DNA of 64,000 nucleotides from Zygnema circumcarinatum SAG 698-1b. Its lineage: Eukaryota > Plantae > Zygnematophyceae. The stretch is taken from assembly GCA_037447605.1 (NCBI GenBank), contig CM074814.1, forward strand, positions 1,302,001-1,366,000, in the 5' to 3' direction. Position 1 is the stretch's first letter. Every line of letters starts with the position of its first letter. A model generated the notes under the pieces. It was not told where the DNA came from, made no database searches, and was given only the letters and a program-made list of their open reading frames with translations. Shown here one piece after another: positions 6,555 through 49,067 of the stretch. The translations under genes were made by a program, and so were the position numbers.

Positions 6555-12437
<5,883 letters not shown>

Positions 12438-33645: not shown

Positions 33646-34538
33646 AACTGTTCATTTCTCACCCTCCCAATTTGTTGTCCGTACATAACCGTACAATTTT
33701 TTATGAAGTACAGTAGGACCCCGTCATATTTTCCACCTTCAAAAGTGCGTCCTCAAGAAATTCGCCCCGATTTTGCCGAAACCACCTTTTTGTACGGTAA
33801 CTTGTGTTAGCCGTACTAACCGTACTAGATGTACTAGCCGTCACGGGCTTACGCAAAACTCACCTATTCTCCCCGCACGTGCCGCCGTAAGAGGCGCTCG
33901 CTCTTCTCCACTTCATCTTGGATTCGATACGATACGATACGCACCGATACGGTACTATCCGTACTAGCCGTACGAGCTGTAGTAGCCGTTACGGGCTCGA
34001 AGCATTTTGGTTTGCTGCCTCAGTAAACGCTAAGGCGTGCTTCATGTACTGTATGCGGTTTGCCAGGCGTGCTTCATGTACTGTACAGTAGGGGGTCCTC
34101 ATATTTTCCACCCTGGTTCCGGGCAAAATGAGGCGAAAATATTAAATTTGCATATATAAGGTTCGTGTTACGAATAGACGGGCGGTATTATGTTAGAGTT
34201 CATGTTGAACCTTACGTATCGTACCGTACCATATCGTACCGTATCGTACTGTACCATTTAGCATCGTATCGTATCGTGGCATATCGTGACGCATATACTG
34301 TTGTACATACTGTCGTCATCCAACCATCGGGGAGTTTCGTATCGTATTGACCGTATCGTATCGTATCATATCGTATCGAAGTCAAGAAGACGGGTAGAAG
34401 AGCGAGCGCCTCTTACGGCGGCACGAGCGGGGAGATTAGGTGCGTTTTGCGTAAGCCCGGAACGTGTAGCGTAACGGAGCTGCGTTCGACGGATCCGCGC
34501 CCGGACGGATCCGCGCCCGTTCAGTTGTACTTGACATG

Positions 34539-35257
34539 TGTTAGTGTACATAGTTAGTTCAGATTAGCATGTTTGTGTTGGCGCTTAGTTCCTAGGGGTG
34601 TGCTTCTAGGTGTGACATGTATGGGGACGGACTTACTTCAGCGTGCGCGCGGCGGCGAGACCGACCGCGCAACCGTACGGATAGTATGGACCGTACGGAC
34701 CGTACGGTCGGTACGGACAGTACGGCCGAGAGTCCGACATTTGGTACCGCGCCGAGGAATCGGTCCTGGCGTACGGAATCGTGGACTGATGCGGCGGAAG
34801 ACGGCGGAGTCGGTGGAGGCGGCGGAGCGTACTTTGCGTACGGAAGATAGTCCTTGTGGGTGACGGCGGGAAGTTCAGCTCGGCGGTAGAGTACATGGCC
34901 ATCTGGGTTAGAGCGGTGGTGTTGGTACGTTGCCAGGCTGGGTGTACTATGCATAGCAAGACACGAAGTAGTTTATTTAGGTTGTTTGAATAAGGTTGTT
35001 GCATGCATGGTCCCGGCGCGTGTGACGTGACATGGTCACGTCACAGCCCCATACTATATAGTGAGAGTGGGTGTGTAAGTTAAAAACCTTCTTGATATGC
35101 ATTGCAAGGCTATGGCAGTTTGAAGGCATGGCTTTGGCAACAGGAGGTGGACCTTTGTGAGGAGTCTCCGTGTGTGGAGAGCTGCCTCACGTGAAGGTGA
35201 AGTGATCATGTGGTGAAAGCTTGACTAGGCTTATGGGGGCTTGAGTTGGAAAGCTTG
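34539..35257. mobile_element. Possible second LTR element inserted into the first LTR
   Basis: The family sequence gtacttgacat is followed here by TGTTAGTG... instead of the atgcctcttcc seen in the 59444 copy. There is a TATA-like ctatatag at about 35053. The other end is not visible. Confidence 0.4.
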
Positions 35258-35267
35258 NNNNNNNNNN

Positions 35268-36394
35268 CGTACTAGCCGTACGAGCTGTAGTAGCCGTTAC
35301 GGGCTCGAAGCATTTTGGTTTGCTGCCTCAGTAAACGCTAAGGCGTGCTTCATGTACTGTATGCGGTTTGCCAGGCGTGCTTCATGTACTGTACAGTAGG
35401 GGGTCCTCATATTTTCCACCCTGGTTCCGGGCAAAATGAGGCGAAAATATTAAATTTGCATATATAAGGTTCGTGTTACGAATAGACGGGCGGTATTATG
35501 TTAGAGTTCATGTTGAACCTTACGTATCGTACCGTACCATATCGTACCGTATCGTACTGTACCATTTAGCATCGTATCGTATCGTGGCATATCGTGACGC
35601 ATATACTGTTGTACATACTGTCGTCATCCAACCATCGGGGAGTTTCGTATCGTATTGACCGTATCGTATCGTATCATATCGTATCGAAGTCAAGAAGACG
35701 GGTAGAAGAGCGAGCGCCTCTTACGGCGGCACGAGCGGGGAGATTAGGTGCGTTTTGCGTAAGCCCGGAACGTGTAGCGTAACGGAGCTGCGTTCGACGG
35801 ATCCGCGCCCGGACGGATCCGCGCCCGTTCAGTTGTACTTGACATGTGTTAGTGTACATAGTTAGTTCAGATTAGCATGTTTGTGTTGGCGCTTAGTTCC
35901 TAGGGGTGTGCTTCTAGGTGTGACATGTATGGGGACGGACTTACTTCAGCGTGCGCGCGGCGGCGAGACCGACCGCGCAACCGTACGGATAGTATGGACC
36001 GTACGGACCGTACGGTCGGTACGGACAGTACGGCCGAGAGTCCGACATTTGGTACCGCGCCGAGGAATCGGTCCTGGCGTACGGAATCGTGGACTGATGC
36101 GGCGGAAGACGGCGGAGTCGGTGGAGGCGGCGGAGCGTACTTTGCGTACGGAAGATAGTCCTTGTGGGTGACGGCGGGAAGTTCAGCTCGGCGGTAGAGT
36201 ACATGGCCATCTGGGTTAGAGCGGTGGTGTTGGTACGTTGCCAGGCTGGGTGTACTATGCATAGCAAGACACGAAGTAGTTTATTTAGGTTGTTTGAATA
36301 AGGTTGTTGCATGCATGGTCCCGGCGCGTGTGACGTGACATGGTCACGTCACAGCCCCATACTATATAGTGAGAGTGGGTGTGTAAGTTAAAAA
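35268..36394. other. Apparently identical copy of 33960-35086 between two 10-N gaps (probable assembly overlap)
   Basis: Constant offset of 1308 bp with identical ORFs in the track; the block starts and ends at N runs. Confidence 0.8.
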
Positions 36395-36404
36395 NNNNNN
36401 NNNN

Positions 36405-37739
36405 AGGCTCAAGATCTATTGTCAGTGTTAGGTAGATGGGATGTCAGTGATGCTTGTTTGTCTTTTAGTGCTGGGCTTAGTATTTGTATTTGCTGTGTGG
36501 TTTGTTGTCTTGTTCTTCTCTTCTTCCTCTTCAGTTCCAGCAACAGATGCTAAGTGTGAGAGAGAGAGAGAGTTCCATGCCATAGATAGAGAGAGAGAGA
36601 GAGAGAAAGAGTCTTCTTGCTGATAGCATTTAGACGTCCCATTCAGCCCAGCTAGACAAAGATTTCAGTGAGAAGATCCTTTCATTGTAATGACTATCCC
36701 CAGCCAACCGCTGGCTGGGGTGACTTTCCAAAATACAACCTTTATCTAAATTGAGTCCTGTTTTCCCTTTGCTGTCACTATGCCAAGCTACCATCTTGTT
36801 CTATCCTGCCTTGCATCCCTCCCAATGACCAATGATAACTAGAAGCCTAGCTAAGAGACTAGCCGAGGAGAGGACAGGGGAAGAGAGCCCCCAAGGAAGG
36901 GCTCTTTGCGCATCGAGTCCAGCCGCCGGTGGGAACATCTTCAGGATCCCTACGTCTTCCGCTGCGCGTACCTCTGAATCTCCCGGATCCTGGCTCTATG
37001 CTGCAGGCAGACCCACAGGACCAACACAACCCTTCATCAGTTTCAGCACGGACGCGCGAGTGGCCGTACAGCACCTGCAACTAGCTCAACAGTCTCCTTT
37101 TAACCCCACTTATCTTGTGCTACAAACGGCTAGTACAGATAGTACGTACAGTACGGACAGTACAAACAGTACGAACAGTACGGCTAACACAAGTTACCGT
37201 ACAAAAAAGTGGTTTCGGCAAATTTGGGGCGAAAATATTGAGGACGCACTCCTTGGGGTGGTAAATACGAGGACCCCCCACTGTATGCGGTTTTCCACGA
37301 TACGATACGGCACGATTCGGTGCGATATGATTGGATTACGATACGATACGATACGATACGTACGGACATACATGAACTCTAACATAATTCCGCTCGCCTA
37401 TTTGTAACACGGACCTTATATTTGCCAAATACAATATGGGGGCGACTATTTACAGTGTACGGATTCTGAATGTAGTGTACGATTTCGCCGGGCAGCAAAA
37501 AAATCCTTTTTTTGGTTGCCCAACGCTGTTTCATACTTTTTAGAATAGATACAGACCTTTTTTCGTCGGATGTACGGATAGTGATTTGAAATGTACCAAC
37601 CGCGCGCGTCTACAAGGTAGAAGGGCGCAACACGTGGAGCGACATGATTGGTGCGGCAACATATGACGTGACAAGTATGTTTTGGACCGTGACGTGACGA
37701 AACGAGACGCGACAAAAGTGGAGTCCGCGGACGGCAGTC
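36405..37739. other. Apparently identical copy of 37770-39104 between two 10-N gaps (probable assembly overlap)
   Basis: Constant offset of 1365 bp with identical ORFs in the track; the block is bounded by N runs. Confidence 0.8.
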
Positions 37740-38802
37740 NNNNNNNNNNATCAGGGACTGTCACTACTAAGGCTCAAGATCTATTGTCAGTGTTAGGTAG
37801 ATGGGATGTCAGTGATGCTTGTTTGTCTTTTAGTGCTGGGCTTAGTATTTGTATTTGCTGTGTGGTTTGTTGTCTTGTTCTTCTCTTCTTCCTCTTCAGT
37901 TCCAGCAACAGATGCTAAGTGTGAGAGAGAGAGAGAGTTCCATGCCATAGATAGAGAGAGAGAGAGAGAGAAAGAGTCTTCTTGCTGATAGCATTTAGAC
38001 GTCCCATTCAGCCCAGCTAGACAAAGATTTCAGTGAGAAGATCCTTTCATTGTAATGACTATCCCCAGCCAACCGCTGGCTGGGGTGACTTTCCAAAATA
38101 CAACCTTTATCTAAATTGAGTCCTGTTTTCCCTTTGCTGTCACTATGCCAAGCTACCATCTTGTTCTATCCTGCCTTGCATCCCTCCCAATGACCAATGA
38201 TAACTAGAAGCCTAGCTAAGAGACTAGCCGAGGAGAGGACAGGGGAAGAGAGCCCCCAAGGAAGGGCTCTTTGCGCATCGAGTCCAGCCGCCGGTGGGAA
38301 CATCTTCAGGATCCCTACGTCTTCCGCTGCGCGTACCTCTGAATCTCCCGGATCCTGGCTCTATGCTGCAGGCAGACCCACAGGACCAACACAACCCTTC
38401 ATCAGTTTCAGCACGGACGCGCGAGTGGCCGTACAGCACCTGCAACTAGCTCAACAGTCTCCTTTTAACCCCACTTATCTTGTGCTACAAACGGCTAGTA
38501 CAGATAGTACGTACAGTACGGACAGTACAAACAGTACGAACAGTACGGCTAACACAAGTTACCGTACAAAAAAGTGGTTTCGGCAAATTTGGGGCGAAAA
38601 TATTGAGGACGCACTCCTTGGGGTGGTAAATACGAGGACCCCCCACTGTATGCGGTTTTCCACGATACGATACGGCACGATTCGGTGCGATATGATTGGA
38701 TTACGATACGATACGATACGATACGTACGGACATACATGAACTCTAACATAATTCCGCTCGCCTATTTGTAACACGGACCTTATATTTGCCAAATACAAT
38801 AT

Positions 38803-39502
38803 GGGGGCGACTATTTACAGTGTACGGATTCTGAATGTAGTGTACGATTTCGCCGGGCAGCAAAAAAATCCTTTTTTTGGTTGCCCAACGCTGTTTCATA
38901 CTTTTTAGAATAGATACAGACCTTTTTTCGTCGGATGTACGGATAGTGATTTGAAATGTACCAACCGCGCGCGTCTACAAGGTAGAAGGGCGCAACACGT
39001 GGAGCGACATGATTGGTGCGGCAACATATGACGTGACAAGTATGTTTTGGACCGTGACGTGACGAAACGAGACGCGACAAAAGTGGAGTCCGCGGACGGC
39101 AGTCGGAAATGGCGGGAATAAAAACTGACAGATTTTTCCTGAAACACGCTACGTTATGTGCCCTAACTTTCTCTGTCAGTTTTAATTCCGGCCATTTCCG
39201 ACTGCCGTCCGCGGACTCCACTTTTGTCGCGTCTCGTTTTGTCACGTCACGGTCCCAAACATACTTGCCACGTCATATGTTGCCGCGACCAATCATGTTG
39301 CTCCACGTGTTGCGCCCTTATACCTTGTAGACGCGCGCGCTTGGTACATTTCAAATCACTATCCGTACATCCGACGAAAAAAGGTCTGTATCTATTCTAA
39401 AAAGTATGAAACAGCGTTGGGCAACCAAAAAAAGGATTTTTTTGCTGCCCGGCGAAATCGTACACTACATTCAGAATCCGTACACTGTAAATAGTCGCCC
39501 CC
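38803..39502. mobile_element. 700-bp foldback element with long TIRs and an 8-bp TSD
   Basis: TACAATAT|GGGGGCGACTATTTACAGTG ... CACTGTAAATAGTCGCCCCC|TACAATAT. The arms are about 330 bp with a short spacer, and the element is inserted in a MITE family 1 sequence. Confidence 0.88.
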
Positions 39503-43373: not shown

Positions 43374-44674
43374 ACAACGCAAGAATGTTGATGAGGCCTT
43401 TGTTAAATTTTGGTACTTTTGTACATATGAGAAATGAGAAATCAGAAATGTAAGGGTGGATACCAGTAGTTTGGTTTCGCATTGAATTCGAGGAGTTAAA
43501 CCATTTGGAGTTCGTCGTTAACAGAAGCAATAAAATTTTATGGCGTAGTTGAGAGAGAAGCTTTAATAAGGCTATCCCATGTGGTTTCGTCATGAGTAGG
43601 AGAAATTGTTACTCACGTTTTGATAGAGCTATTGAGAGCTCCATTCAAAAACGGAGAGGGCCATTGTTGTAAATATTGCATGGCTAATTTTCTTCATGGT
43701 TCAAGATAGACATAGTAGAAATGCACGCAATCTACAGAGGGTGAGGGAGGGACGAGGAGGGAGGTGGAGGGGGAAGGGGAGGGAGAGGGAGAGCGAAGGG
43801 AGGGAGAGGGAAAGGGAAAGAGAACGAGATAAAGAGGGAGGACAACATTTGTCACAGTTTGTGCATCCTGCTGTGCCAAGGTAGATTCTCTCGAGAAAAA
43901 CAAGCATAGCAAAGGGAAGAAAAAAAAAAGGAATTAGGGATCACCCTCATGCGTGTCTTTCTTACAAAGGGAGTGGGAGAAGGAGAGGAAAAAAGAGAGG
44001 ATGACCATTCATTATACGAGGCCAGGCAAGGCTTCGCTTGACCTTAACTCCCAACGCCCTCACAATGTATGGCTTCTAGAGAGGGAAAGTAGGAAAGGGA
44101 CAGAGAAGATAACCATTCGTCACTTGCGGCGCATCCCACACACAGTACCAATGGAGCCTATTATCAAGGAAAACAAACATTGAAGAGGGAGGAGAAAGGA
44201 GATCAGGAATTGGAGGGTCTTTTCGTAGAAATAATTTCGTCTACATTTTTTTTTTTAAAATATGTACAAGGTGTCTAAACAAGCTCCGCTTGACGGCACC
44301 TTCCTCAGATGTGTTTATGGCTTACAATCTTCTTAGTCTGCTGTTCTAAATGAGCTACAAGATACCGCCAGGAGTGCCGCCACTCCAGAGCCGCCTTATA
44401 CTAAAGCCACATCGTAACCATCTATCTACTCATCAGATAGCACCTCCTCTCATTTCTACATAGTAAGTACAAAGCGAGTGTAATTTTACAACGTTCCCCA
44501 ATTCGAGGTGAAGGTCGCCTTCCCATCCTTCCCGCCTGCCATATCATATCGCTTTTGGATCGCAGTGGACATTCAGACACGGCTTCTTTCGAAGCTCTCC
44601 AGCTTTCTGCCAGACGGAAAGGTTTGGGGGGCGCAGTTGGATCTGAAAAAATAAATCTCCTTTGGGCATGCATT

Positions 44675-47600
44675 TTATGGCCGAAGTGCCCATAGCATCG
44701 ATAAAGCTCCGAATAGGTTGACGGTAGCGAGCTGCAGGAGACAAATTTTGTTAGCTTGAATGGAGGGTCAGCCATGTTCAGCCCCCAAGACAACAAACAT
44801 TCGGAGGCAGAGCAAATTGGAGATTGGAGATCAGCATTTGGGCAGAACTAGGCTTAACACAAAGCATCACATTGAAATCCTTTCTTTATTGGAAGGTTGA
44901 TTGACATTGTTGGACAGCGTACCACTATTAAAGATATTTGCATCGCGCCAAATGCAACCAGGGCACAGAATGCGAAAAACAGAACCTGCAAGGCAGAAAA
45001 AAAAACGCCGCTTATGTCCAAGATCAACGAATAGAAGACAGGAAAGATGAACACACTCGATGAAGCACTGCTGAAGGGTTGGACAGTGAGATACAACAGA
45101 AAACGTACTGTCCGACTGAAGACAGTAGAAAGGTAAAAGCTCCGGGCTCCGTGCCCGCCGAGGTCTCCCCGTGCTGTTCCTATGTAGTTTATTCCAAAAA
45201 CCTGCAGAGGTCATCCACTTGAAGGCTCACTAACAGATCCACATTCCCCTTCCAATGAACTGCACGATTGGGCACCTGTGCTGATGAAACTCGACTCGAT
45301 GGCAGTTTTATCATAAAGAACACTACTAACTAGAGCGGATGTGAGGTCAAATTTTAATTGCAGAAGTCCTTACAAGGCAAAGAACACCCAGCACTTGTAT
45401 CCAGCCCCGGGAAATAGACCGTACATCAAAAAGTAAACCTGCACAGGATGAGAAAAATGATGAGAAAGGAGGCAGACGAAGCGCTAGATTATCACAGGCA
45501 AGAAAACAAGAAGTAGGCAAAAGTTAATTGGTTTGCATTGTAAATCTGTTTACTAAAGGGACCGCAGACTTGGCAATAAAACTTGGAACGCCTCTGGGTA
45601 CTTGCAGAACATAAACATTGTACTCCGCCCTCTTGGATATCACTTCCTTTGAGCCCCAGATAAAAAGGAAACATGAACAAAAGAAAACAGATTATCTCTA
45701 GTGTCATACACCAAACAAGATAGCACCCGGCATGACCAATTGTTGACCATGAATGTTGTACATAGTTACATGTCGACTAAGGATCGATAATTCATCTACC
45801 GGGCTTCCGTTATACCCCCAATAAACAAAAAAATCCTCGAACATTACGCAAGCGCAGCAAAAATTCAAACACAATTCCAAGGAGATAGGCCATTGCAAGT
45901 CGACCAGGGCCAGATGAGTCATTTACCAAATACTTGCTTGGGAAAGGCAATAGTGGCAAGTCCAACCACGGTAATGTATGCTCCTGTGATGAGTGCAACT
46001 CTGGCAGCACGCTTGGAATGTACAGGAGCACCTGACTCTCCCTGCTCCACAGCCGTCCATTGTACGCTTGGCAGCTGCTTTCTAGCGAGCCTCTGAATCA
46101 CTTCATCCACTCCCCCTCCGTCAGCGATGAAGTCTCTCCGTCCTCTGCCGCTTCGCTGACTTACAGCTGGTTCTATGCTGTCCATCACAACCATGAACCC
46201 ATCCCATCGTAGTCTCAACATCTGATGTAAACAAGGACTGGTGACGAATGATGACCCATAACGAATTGTAGGACCTCCGTAGTCCAAATACGAAAAGACG
46301 TATTTATTCCTTTCTTTATACCGTAAAGTGCTCATGCGTGGGGGTGGCATTTGCAATGTATCATTCTTGTCTCCAAACATGATGGTGCTTAGCTTGCCGT
46401 GGCAGCTATTCGGTCGTGTCGGCATGAAGTTGTGAATCAGTCACCTCCTCGATCTCAGTTTCAACAAATGTAACTTGAAACATTGATCTTGCTACAGCCG
46501 GTTTCACATTAAGTATTTTCAGGAAAAAGTAGTTAGAAGCGATTGCCCTATTCACAAATTGCAGCCAGAGCTTAAGACAGAGCTTTAAGCTGATATACGA
46601 AAGGTGGACTGACAATATTCTTGGGTATCGCCTCCGAAGCTACTCACCGACCTTATTGATCCACGGTTGCTGATGGATGCAATCTCTGGATGTGGCCGTG
46701 CCCCATCCTCCGGACCTGACACAATCTCGTTTGCTATTCCAATCATGGCAGGCTCCATTGCCAATGCAAACACAGCCGCCCGGCGATCCTTGTTCAGTCC
46801 TGCGTAAACTTCACCAGCAAGGCGTCCCAAGACGAGCACATCTCCGCCTGCCCGAATGATGGAGCCCATGCCTACATCACCAAATACCTGCCAAAGCCAA
46901 CTGAGCATCATCATGTTCAGAGACATTGTACATGCCACCCCCGCGCATGAGCACTTTACAGCAGAATGAACGGAAGAAACTGGTCTTAAGTGACCAAGAT
47001 AACGAATACCTGCAAACAGTTACAAGTGCATCAAGGAATTTCTGGCACAAGGCACGAGTGCCATCTGCAGGACAAAGGATAGGTTCAATTGTCAAGCAAA
47101 CCTACAGCAGCCGCGCAATCGCGAACAGATTAACGCGGGTATGTCAATTAGAAACAAATCCACGAAAAAATCTACGAGCTCCATGTTTCTTCGAACATTT
47201 CTCTCTACACTTCCTTCCATATCAAGGAGTGTACTTAACCACTCTAATAACAGTACACTCAGATAGGCAAAACAAATGGCTCACCCAAATGATGGTAAGA
47301 CTTTCATATTCACTACCTTGATCCCTCCTAACGATCGCTTCCTCGCTTCACTTCGGCAAATTCTCTGACCTCAACCGACCATCATTGCGAAATCTCTCAC
47401 GTACAAAAGCAAAAAGAGTTGTAATGGTTTCGAAATTGATATTTAAACAAGAAATAAGGACAAGTAAACATCGAAAACACACCGTGCTATTTAGAGGTCA
47501 TGAAACGGAGAAGCAAAGAGCTCACCACGACAGAACCTTCGTAATTCACCTCCTCATACTGTCGAATGTTACGCTTGATATAGAGACATAAGCTACCCAT

Positions 47601-47927
47601 CGCGTCCGCCTGCGACTTATCCTTGCCTATCTCCTGAAGCCACGTTCCGCGAGTTGGACGGAGCCGAGCAGCTAGAACCTTCTCTACATCACGCGGCTGC
47701 CGATTCAGACCACCTTCTCCATACTCTCTCCCCCTCTCATTCCCTCTCCACCCCCCTCGAAACGTAGCACATGTCACCCTCCTTTTTGCAAGACCCCGAG
47801 GCCTTGAGAACTGCAGGCAGTCGCAGCCATGGTTTGCTACTCTCTCTCCCCTCCTCCATAAACCCCTGTCCTTCAGAGGCGCAAGCACCTTTCCTGTGAG
47901 CTCAGCCGGCTGGACCAGCCACTCCAT
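44675..47927 (-). CDS. minC: MinC C-terminal-domain protein fused to a 4-TM membrane domain, with a transit-peptide-like N-terminus (404 aa)
   Basis: Exons 47927-47526, 46887-46648, 46221-45927, 45438-45374, 45201-45109, 44985-44923 and 44731-44675 all join in phase at GT-AG sites. The segment CLYIKRNIRQYEEVNYEGSVV|VFGDVGMGSIIRAGGDVLVLGRLAGEVYAG...AVFALAMEPAMIGIA...HPEIASI has the MinC beta-helix pattern. Confidence 0.8.
46323..46959. repeat. Degenerate inverted repeat (46323-46426 vs 46867-46959) bracketing MinC exon 2
   Basis: gtaaagtgctcatgcg(t/c)gggggtggcat(t/g)t(g/a)caatgt ... aacatgatg(g/a)tgct ... tggcag.tatt.ggt..tgt.ggcatg is present on opposite strands. Confidence 0.85.
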
Positions 47928-49067
47928 GGCTGCTCCCCTCCTCCTCCTCCTCCTGCTGCTGCGCCTCCTTCAAGGAGAGCCCAAGGCCACTATGACTGCC
48001 CTTCCAGCGGTCAAATTTGCTTTCAGGAAGTTCCGGAGCAGCTCTCAATTCAGGCTCCTTTGTTAAGAGCAGCCAATCACCGCATGTCACGTGTACAGTA
48101 TGTCTACGTGGCCGTTTCTGATTGAACTTCCCGCCCTCGGGGGTGCCCACTTGCAACTGCAATCTTTGGTGCCCGCAGGAATATTGCAACAAACTCGCAT
48201 TGAGTAATGCGCCGATTACATTCATTATATAAACTCTTATGTGCAAGGTATTAATTCTAACTTTGAACCCTACCCGTGCAAAATAAGACCGTATACCGTA
48301 TGCTAACAATGTAATTATTTTAGAAAATTTCAACTTTTTGTCGAGCTCCCCATGTTGCTTTTGAAGAGAGAAATGATGTGGCATTGATTGGTCTCACGCA
48401 TGCTGGTGATGCCATCACATGTGCATGGACAAAATCAACATCATGGGGAACCACGAGGAACTAACTGGTCCCAAAGGACCTAAGCACAAAGGAAAGAGCC
48501 TCCTACATTTTATTCTCCCGTTATTCTCTTTCACCTTTGGCTCGCACGTGCCAAAGTTCGTTCACTTCACGAGTGTGAACCATGGGTCGCTTTCTCTAGG
48601 GCTTATTTGTAAGACGGGCAATGTCTCCTACTATGGCACTATTGGCGTTCTCATGCCGCGAAGTGCATAATTCAACATGTACATCCGCAGTTGACATTGA
48701 ATGGTTAGAGCACGTCTGCGAGTTTGTTACAGTTGTATCAGAGCCAAATAATTCGTCATTGCAATCCACTGTAAACACACCATGATCCTTAAGCATGGTA
48801 AGGATTGCCTACACTGTTGTCTGGCCAACGATTGGAGGTCCAAGTGATGAAAGGGCTTGAACACAACAACATGGCTTGAATGCAACTTGTTCAACAAAAA
48901 GGGAGTATGACGAAGGAGACACGCGCGCATATGTATGTCGAGACGAGGCCAAAACAATTGCCACAGTGATTCCAAGGCAGAGCCCGGGGGAGAGCCAACG
49001 AGCGGCTGCCACGTGGCAACAGGCGCAAAAAGGGGGGGTGGGGCGGGCGGCATGGCTATGGCCATTA

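Follow-up and report, generated by a model that had tools for sequence, protein, structure and literature searches.

A nuclear gene of Zygnema circumcarinatum joins a MinC C-terminal domain to a conserved four-helix membrane domain kept across the green lineage

Bacterial MinC is a soluble protein that needs MinD to reach the membrane. Both of its domains are FtsZ-inhibitory, and the C-terminal one, which holds the dimer interface, is also the MinD-binding domain in bacteria (PMC6803595). According to reviews, plants lost MinC and use ARC3 (PMC13650779, PMC8646090), which is found in the stroma, resembles MinC little in sequence and serves as its functional analogue in seed plants (PMC13650779). 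'MinC-like' genes in the moss Physcomitrium patens and in green algae are credited to Yang et al. 2008 where PMC2995336 cites that work, and the moss sequence or a green-algal MinC is mentioned without analysis in several papers (PMC2995336, PMC10030945, PMC4641359, PMC3499364). One of these has a Chlamydomonas MinC-like entry in its Table 1 (PMC4641359), and in another the moss gene was proposed to compensate for the missing ARC3 (PMC10030945). Here we describe a gene of this kind in a 64,000-nucleotide stretch of the genome of the alga Zygnema circumcarinatum SAG 698-1b (contig CM074814.1, positions 1,302,001 to 1,366,000; hereafter the window, whose numbering we use throughout). The gene occupies 47927–44675 on the minus strand and is single-copy within the window. 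Its 388-amino-acid product consists of a variable N-terminus, a MinC C-terminal domain (MinC_C), a disordered linker of about 45 residues and a highly conserved four-helix membrane (4TM) domain without known family.

With bacterial and cyanobacterial MinC (1HF2, 4V02, 5XDM, 6RIQ) the protein shares the C-terminal right-handed beta-helix (PF03775), in sequence as well as in predicted fold, and the nearest bacterial relatives of its MinC_C are cyanobacterial. It differs from them in having no N-terminal FtsZ-inhibiting domain, in reading RQYE for RSGQ, in being fused to four predicted membrane helices where bacterial MinC is soluble, and in being encoded by a nuclear gene with six introns. With ARC3 it would share a proposed role, the negative regulation of plastid Z-ring assembly; the domains typical of ARC3 (FtsZ-like and PIP5K/MORN-like regions) gave no Pfam match on any exon or homologue. 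An earlier interpretation of this DNA made from its letters alone, here called the sequence-only reading, had proposed an architecture unlike both soluble bacterial MinC and ARC3, and the four membrane helices together with the absence of ARC3-type domains agree with that proposal. The gene is a member of the 'MinC-like' group of mosses and green algae, and Ceratodon and liverworts have the same architecture. Finally, core chlorophytes possess stand-alone proteins with the same four-helix domain, in which a short transit-like leader takes the place of MinC_C.

That MinC and membrane exons belong to one transcript is seen directly in RNA. Contigs from four public runs of the same organism, mapped over 44400–48100, show a nuclear gene that is transcribed and correctly spliced from seven exons separated by GT..AG introns, with both sets of exons on a single mRNA. 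Across the four runs, exons are covered at depths of about 80–430 and introns at 0–26. Five of the six junctions (47526/46887, 45927/45438, 45374/45201, 45109/44985 and 44923/44731) are seen in all four runs at exon-level depth, exactly where the sequence-only reading of seven exons had put them. The remaining one, between exons 2 and 3, had been set at 46648/46221 and is relocated by the RNA to 46652/46177 (intron 2, 46178–46651), with a depth of 184–368 in each of the four runs. The 48-nt difference keeps the frame, so that the product has 388 residues and not the 404 first proposed. The corrected junction also recreates, just after the beta-helix, a motif found in aligned homologues (GSISIEPA here, GHICIEPA in Closterium and TISIVPAG in Mesostigma).

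A two-gene arrangement, with a MinC gene ending near 46585 and a neighbouring membrane-protein gene beginning at ATG 46221, would make the fusion an artefact of exon joining. It would draw on the low-level contigs over intron 2 (depth 5–26), where read-through ends the open reading frame (ORF) after 234 amino acids, and on the reading frame that ATG 46221 shares with exon 3. We judge this highly improbable: the joint 46652/46177 is 7- to 38-fold deeper than intron 2 in every run, other introns show a like low background, and the fused order recurs in at least 10 named species. ATG 46221 itself falls within intron 2, and the RNA joints exclude it as the start of a separate gene. The minor RNA that retains intron 2 is probably pre-mRNA, because its depth resembles that of the other introns; by read-through translation, its 234-residue product would be soluble and carry MinC_C only. 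A minor alternative joint inside intron 1 (46882/47005) was seen in run X3 only, at a depth of 10 against about 200 for the main joint.

The MinC part of the protein is spread over three exons. Exon 1 (coding part 47526–47927, residues 1–134, delimited by the ORF, a GT donor and an RNA junction) encodes the variable N-terminal region and, from about residue 115, the first turns of the MinC_C beta-helix; exon 2 (46652–46887, delimited by RNA junctions) encodes the core, and the last strand (SIEPA) lies in exon 3 (45927–46177, from RNA contigs and alignments). Exon 2 alone matches Pfam MinC_C (PF03775) with an E value of 2.2e-16 and 60 bits against a cut-off of 33. Six full-length homologues match the same family at 5e-18 to 1e-28 and match nothing else of note, so that none of the six carries a MinC N-domain. 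On residues 1–134 of the protein itself, no Pfam family was found at E values up to 1, MinC_N included. Both the MinC beta-helix and the lack of an evident MinC N-domain had been called from the sequence beforehand, and both calls stand.

Structure prediction gives the same picture. The AlphaFold model of the Closterium homologue consists of a beta-helix, a disordered linker and four long helices, with a mean predicted local distance difference test score (pLDDT) of 80 and values above 90 in both folded domains. Searched with Foldseek, its beta-helix matches the solved MinC C-domains 4V02, 1HF2, 6RIQ and 5XDM (E 7e-11 to 2e-6), with target template-modelling (TM) scores of 0.83–0.85 for the domain-only chains 4V02, 6RIQ and 5XDM and of about 0.5 for full-length 1HF2. 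A quick maximum-likelihood tree built from 133 MinC_C domains gathers every fused sequence in one 47-leaf clade (support 80 in the Shimodaira–Hasegawa-like approximate likelihood ratio test, SH-aLRT), and the bacteria named in that clade are exclusively cyanobacteria (Microcoleaceae, Cyanophyceae and Thermostichales). The tree thus supports, and does not prove, descent of this MinC_C from cyanobacterial MinC, since the underlying alignment is short (118 columns).

The fusion is not peculiar to Zygnema. Exons and public homologues served as queries in the database searches. Exon 2 returned 812 matches from 1.8 billion representative proteins, and the best of these, along with scattered lower ones, have MinC_C in mid-protein followed by about 150 residues. 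The order MinC_C–linker–4TM is found in Pycnococcus provasolii (whose protein bears the name MinC), Cymbomonas, Mesostigma, Chara braunii, three strains of Closterium and Mesotaenium endlicherianum and, among land plants, in the liverworts Calypogeia and Riccia, the moss Ceratodon and the lycophyte Diphasiastrum. A survey of domain architecture, which the sequence-only reading had proposed, recovers the same arrangement in green algae, bryophytes and a lycophyte. A full-length family profile used in a word-based search found only 8 proteins. AlphaFold DB clusters add several further entries that are named MinC_C-containing and possess the 4TM part, a moss entry named as a MinC_C protein among them. 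By BLASTP, the Zygnema protein is 34–56% identical over 257–366 residues to the proteins of Mesotaenium, Closterium, Ceratodon, Pycnococcus and others, its closest relatives being those of Mesotaenium (56% over 257 residues) and Closterium (46% over 329 residues). Judged by these sequences, it is one member of an old and widespread green-lineage family that reaches from prasinophyte algae to lycophytes.

Two of the public gene models depart from this pattern in detail. That of Mesotaenium has a 64-residue low-complexity insert (residues ~94–157) that splits the beta-helix exactly at the site of intron 1 in the window, and this insert probably reflects an intron left unspliced when the public model was annotated. 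The model of Closterium NIES-64 has duplicated and inserted segments in MinC_C and a truncated 4TM end.

The C-terminal region holds four predicted membrane helices, at about residues 269–299, 307–333, 337–360 and 367–388, so that the four hydrophobic helices of the sequence-only reading are borne out by the sequence and by AlphaFold models. Following the poorly conserved linker (residues 221–266), exon 3 encodes the first helix. Exon 4 (45374–45438) contributes the end of helix 1 with an LFD motif and the start of helix 2 with a GWIQV motif, exon 5 (45109–45201) helix 2, loop 2 and the start of helix 3, and exon 6 (44923–44985) helix 3 and loop 3; exon 7 (coding part 44675–44731) encodes helix 4 with an invariant Asn and ends in the stop codon TAA at 44675–44677. 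These assignments follow RNA contigs and alignments, with the ORF fixing the last exon. The conserved domain as a whole covers residues 267–388 (44678–46017, introns included), has a pLDDT of 95 in the AlphaFold model and, in an alignment of 12 family members, shows 58% mean column identity with 18 invariant columns. The invariant columns include a Pro, an Arg in helix 3 and the Asn in helix 4, an Asp after helix 1 is near-invariant, and the recurrent motifs are TGxYI, FP, LFD, GWI(R/Q)V, YYxGxAxGD, FYxxTVxGR and NxxGAxxM. Mean pairwise identity is 51% in the 4TM domain, 41% in MinC_C, 14% in the linker and 15% in the N-terminus.

This domain has no recognized family. A profile check of the membrane part, another of the tests suggested beforehand, found no Pfam or NCBIfam family at E values up to 5, EamA and other transporter families included, and no PDB sequence matched at E values up to 10. 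Comparison of the model with solved structures yielded nothing significant; in Foldseek the best SMR match was Gdx-Clo at E 5.1, and VIA-align gave generic helical matches with Z below 10. Kinship with EamA/DMT or SMR transporters was therefore set aside as lacking profile or fold support (Pfam, NCBIfam, PDB, Foldseek and VIA-align). A prokaryotic origin was rejected likewise: among 185,579 bacterial and archaeal genomes there was one match, a spurious one inside an acetyltransferase-like ORF of an actinomycete metagenome-assembled genome. Feature matches in the ESM Atlas were at chance level. In AlphaFold DB the weak structural look-alikes are small bacterial four-helix membrane proteins, some of them auto-named EamA-domain. 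A separate structural match, to a 147-residue actinobacterial cluster, has a TM score of 0.85. We treat these as leads only.

The 4TM domain also occurs by itself. Volvox (VOLCADRAFT_93052), Chlamydomonas eustigma (CEUSTIGMA_g5079), Dunaliella, Botryococcus (the latter two as gene models) and an MMETSP alga encode it as a short protein with a transit-like leader. Those of Volvox, C. eustigma, Dunaliella and Botryococcus are all annotated as hypothetical, have the same motifs and match the family profile at E values of 1e-16 to 1e-32, and AlphaFold DB has a 152-residue entry of this kind. No MinC_C coding was detected by tblastn within 8 kb of the stand-alone gene in Volvox or C. eustigma. In both species a few hundred bases separate the start of the gene from a divergent neighbour; the gene stands head-to-head with a large gene without Pfam families (1993 and 1526 residues, respectively), the stand-alone gene occupying 8001–8935 of the extracted Volvox carteri locus and 8001–9281 of that of C. 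eustigma. Two moss-like transcript-derived ORFs of 150 and 140 residues (P0173 and P0174) begin with a Met just upstream of the 4TM domain and have no MinC_C. They share 90% and 73% identity, respectively, with the corresponding part of the Ceratodon fusion, and could be incomplete contigs or a hint of 4TM-only isoforms in mosses.

On these comparisons, the membrane part is the best-conserved part of the protein and more than a mere anchor. The sequence-only reading had cast it as a tether for the MinC domain: its presence is established, and the restriction to anchoring fits poorly with a domain that is conserved above the rest, belongs to no known family and stands alone in Volvocales. One may go further and suppose that the 4TM domain is the business end of the protein, as a small transporter, channel or membrane organizer, with MinC_C serving solely for dimerization or scaffolding and having no role at FtsZ. 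The higher conservation of 4TM relative to MinC_C, the invariant Arg and Asn with the near-invariant Asp, the stand-alone genes and gene models with the 152-residue AlphaFold DB entry, the small bacterial look-alikes and the decayed MinD-contact motif described below would all suit this account. We nonetheless regard it as rather unlikely: MinC_C remains recognizable and under constraint from prasinophytes to lycophytes (Pfam E values down to 1e-28), no EamA or other transporter family in Pfam matches the 4TM domain even at an E value of 5, and among solved structures no PDB match is significant, the SMR transporter Gdx-Clo appearing only at about that value.

The C-domain of bacterial MinC opens with an RSGQ motif that makes contact with helix 7 of MinD (PMC6803595, PMC5548801), and the residues of this motif are described as critical for MinC–MinD binding (PMC5548801). 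An alignment of 12 bacterial MinC sequences with 16 fused homologues has RSGQ in all 12 bacterial proteins and RGGQ or RAGQ in Pycnococcus, Mesostigma and Cymbomonas. At the same position the Zygnema protein reads RQYE (residues 122–125, codons at 47553–47564), with Gly and Gln lost, and Closterium and Mesotaenium read RQFE; moss, liverworts and lycophyte read YSGE, HNGE, GDAE or QSGE, with Arg lost. This alignment shows a MinD-contact motif that decays along the streptophyte line. MinD binding is plausible for early-branching members and has probably been lost, in its bacterial style, in this alga and in land plants. The sequence-only reading spoke of a 'MinD-binding/dimerisation domain'; the domain is indeed that of MinC by its Pfam match, and the MinD-binding half of the label is doubtful for this protein because the RSGQ position reads RQYE.

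The same motif weighs on an account in which MinD is the partner after all, with a membrane-fixed MinC_C docking MinD, and MinE by way of MinD, at the envelope, in a logic like that of the land-plant membrane protein MCD1 and without acting on FtsZ. The bacterial C-domain does bind MinD (PMC6803595), green plastids retain MinD and MinE (PMC13650779), and RGGQ or RAGQ persists in prasinophyte and Mesostigma members. Docking of this kind is nevertheless unlikely, with RQYE here, RQFE in Closterium and Mesotaenium and no Arg in bryophytes and the lycophyte at a position whose residues are critical in bacteria (PMC5548801).

The N-terminus had been described as transit-like in the sequence-only reading, a description that its composition does not favour: the first 40 residues are Arg-rich, contain 5 acidic residues and 1 Ser/Thr, and are atypical for a transit peptide. 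Bryophyte and Chara homologues have Ser-rich, transit-peptide-like N-termini. Because the leader is not canonical here, we infer a plastid location from the probable cyanobacterial ancestry of MinC_C and from the Ser-rich leaders of these relatives. An Arg-rich, Ser/Thr-poor N-terminus would also suit action in mitochondria, like that of MinC and MinD in some heterokonts, and MinC-like mitochondrial proteins have been predicted in Nannochloropsis (PMC3499364). We consider mitochondrial action very unlikely, as this MinC_C groups with cyanobacterial MinC, whereas the heterokont proteins clustered with non-cyanobacterial prokaryotes (PMC3499364), and as the bryophyte and Chara homologues have leaders of the plastid-transit kind. 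As for topology, counts of Lys and Arg make the MinC_C end the positive side in 10 of 12 sequences (mean 3.6 versus 1.4). If the protein resides in the inner envelope, its MinC_C end would thus be expected on the stromal side.

Taken together, these observations suggest a protein that would be embedded in a membrane of the plastid, the inner envelope being the likeliest, and would have MinC_C facing the stroma. A permanent membrane tether would stand in place of MinD-dependent recruitment, and MinC_C would then regulate the assembly or anchoring of the FtsZ ring at the envelope largely independently of MinD. The conserved 4TM domain, whose helices hold or adjoin an invariant Arg, an invariant Asn and a near-invariant Asp, probably supplies more than anchoring, with a function or a partner of its own, for example in placement or regulation. 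We find the chances evenly poised that the protein is a membrane-tethered dimer acting in this MinD-independent manner on plastid FtsZ at the envelope, with 4TM supplying placement, regulation or a second activity. It is the simplest reading of a protein that lacks the N-domain, has its C-domain fastened to a membrane and carries a decayed MinD motif. By analogy with bacterial MinC, we infer a role in plastid division.

Several points weigh against this reading. To our knowledge, the FtsZ-binding residues of MinC are too poorly defined for a sequence test. The N-terminus is not a canonical transit peptide in Zygnema and is Gln- and acid-rich in Closterium. The degenerate RSGQ position could indicate that MinC_C has been repurposed. 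The main function may even reside in the membrane part and be unrelated to FtsZ, because 4TM is more conserved than MinC_C and survives alone in Volvocales. Lastly, a search for localization or interaction data on family members found none in the searchable full-text literature.

A broader evolutionary proposal is possible, and we offer it tentatively. The combination of MinC_C with 4TM might be the ancestral inhibitor of Z-ring placement in green plastids, in which a membrane tether replaced both MinD recruitment and the lost N-domain. The 4TM domain might accordingly be an unrecognized envelope factor for division or placement, kept alone in Chlamydomonas-type algae, and the whole protein might have become dispensable once ARC3 and PARC6 took over in seed plants.

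The ends of the transcript extend beyond the coding exons. ATG 47927 is the first in-frame start, and an in-frame TGA (47970–47972) lies 15 codons upstream within transcribed sequence. The 5′ untranslated region (UTR) covers at least 47928–47998, where a contig of run X5 ends, and contains a GAG/GGA-rich simple repeat at 47941–47961; 47926–47972 was masked as repeat in the mapping of RNA contigs. Contigs of runs X2 (768 nt) and X3 (2276 nt) are colinear from 47524 past this apparent 5′ end to beyond 48100, at lower depth, and their part beyond 47998 could represent a longer 5′ UTR, read-through or an overlapping neighbour transcript. At the other end, contigs are colinear over 44400–44731 at exon depth, which places the 3′ UTR at 44400–44674, at least to the edge of the mapped region.

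Elsewhere in the window, eight neighbouring ORFs match no Pfam family, and the gene context is therefore uninformative. Two exact direct repeats were noted: 36405–37739 equals 37770–39104 (1335 bp, offset 1365), each copy with an identical 191-residue ORF without a Pfam family, and 33960–35086 equals 35268–36394 (1127 bp, offset 1308). The repeats within 33960–39104 stem either from tandem duplication in the very recent past or from an artefact of assembly.

The gene belongs to the 'MinC-like' group that has already been noticed, and the architecture of that group appears to be undescribed. In the full-text-searchable literature, a scope outside which the subscription reviews of Yang 2008, Miyagishima 2011 and Osteryoung and Pyke 2014 fall, we found neither the membrane domain nor the lack of the N-domain described, nor the decay of the motif, nor a membrane-anchored plastid MinC. 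What has been a footnote in reviews of plastid division becomes a membrane protein of distinct, old and conserved design, half MinC and half a 4TM domain of no known family. With it, several questions become testable: how Z-ring placement was controlled in early green plastids, what replaced recruitment by MinD, and what the orphan 4TM domain does, including in the relatives of Chlamydomonas where it stands alone. Knock-outs and localization are feasible, since the family is represented in or close to groups that offer tractable models, namely mosses, liverworts, Closterium and the Volvox/Chlamydomonas group.

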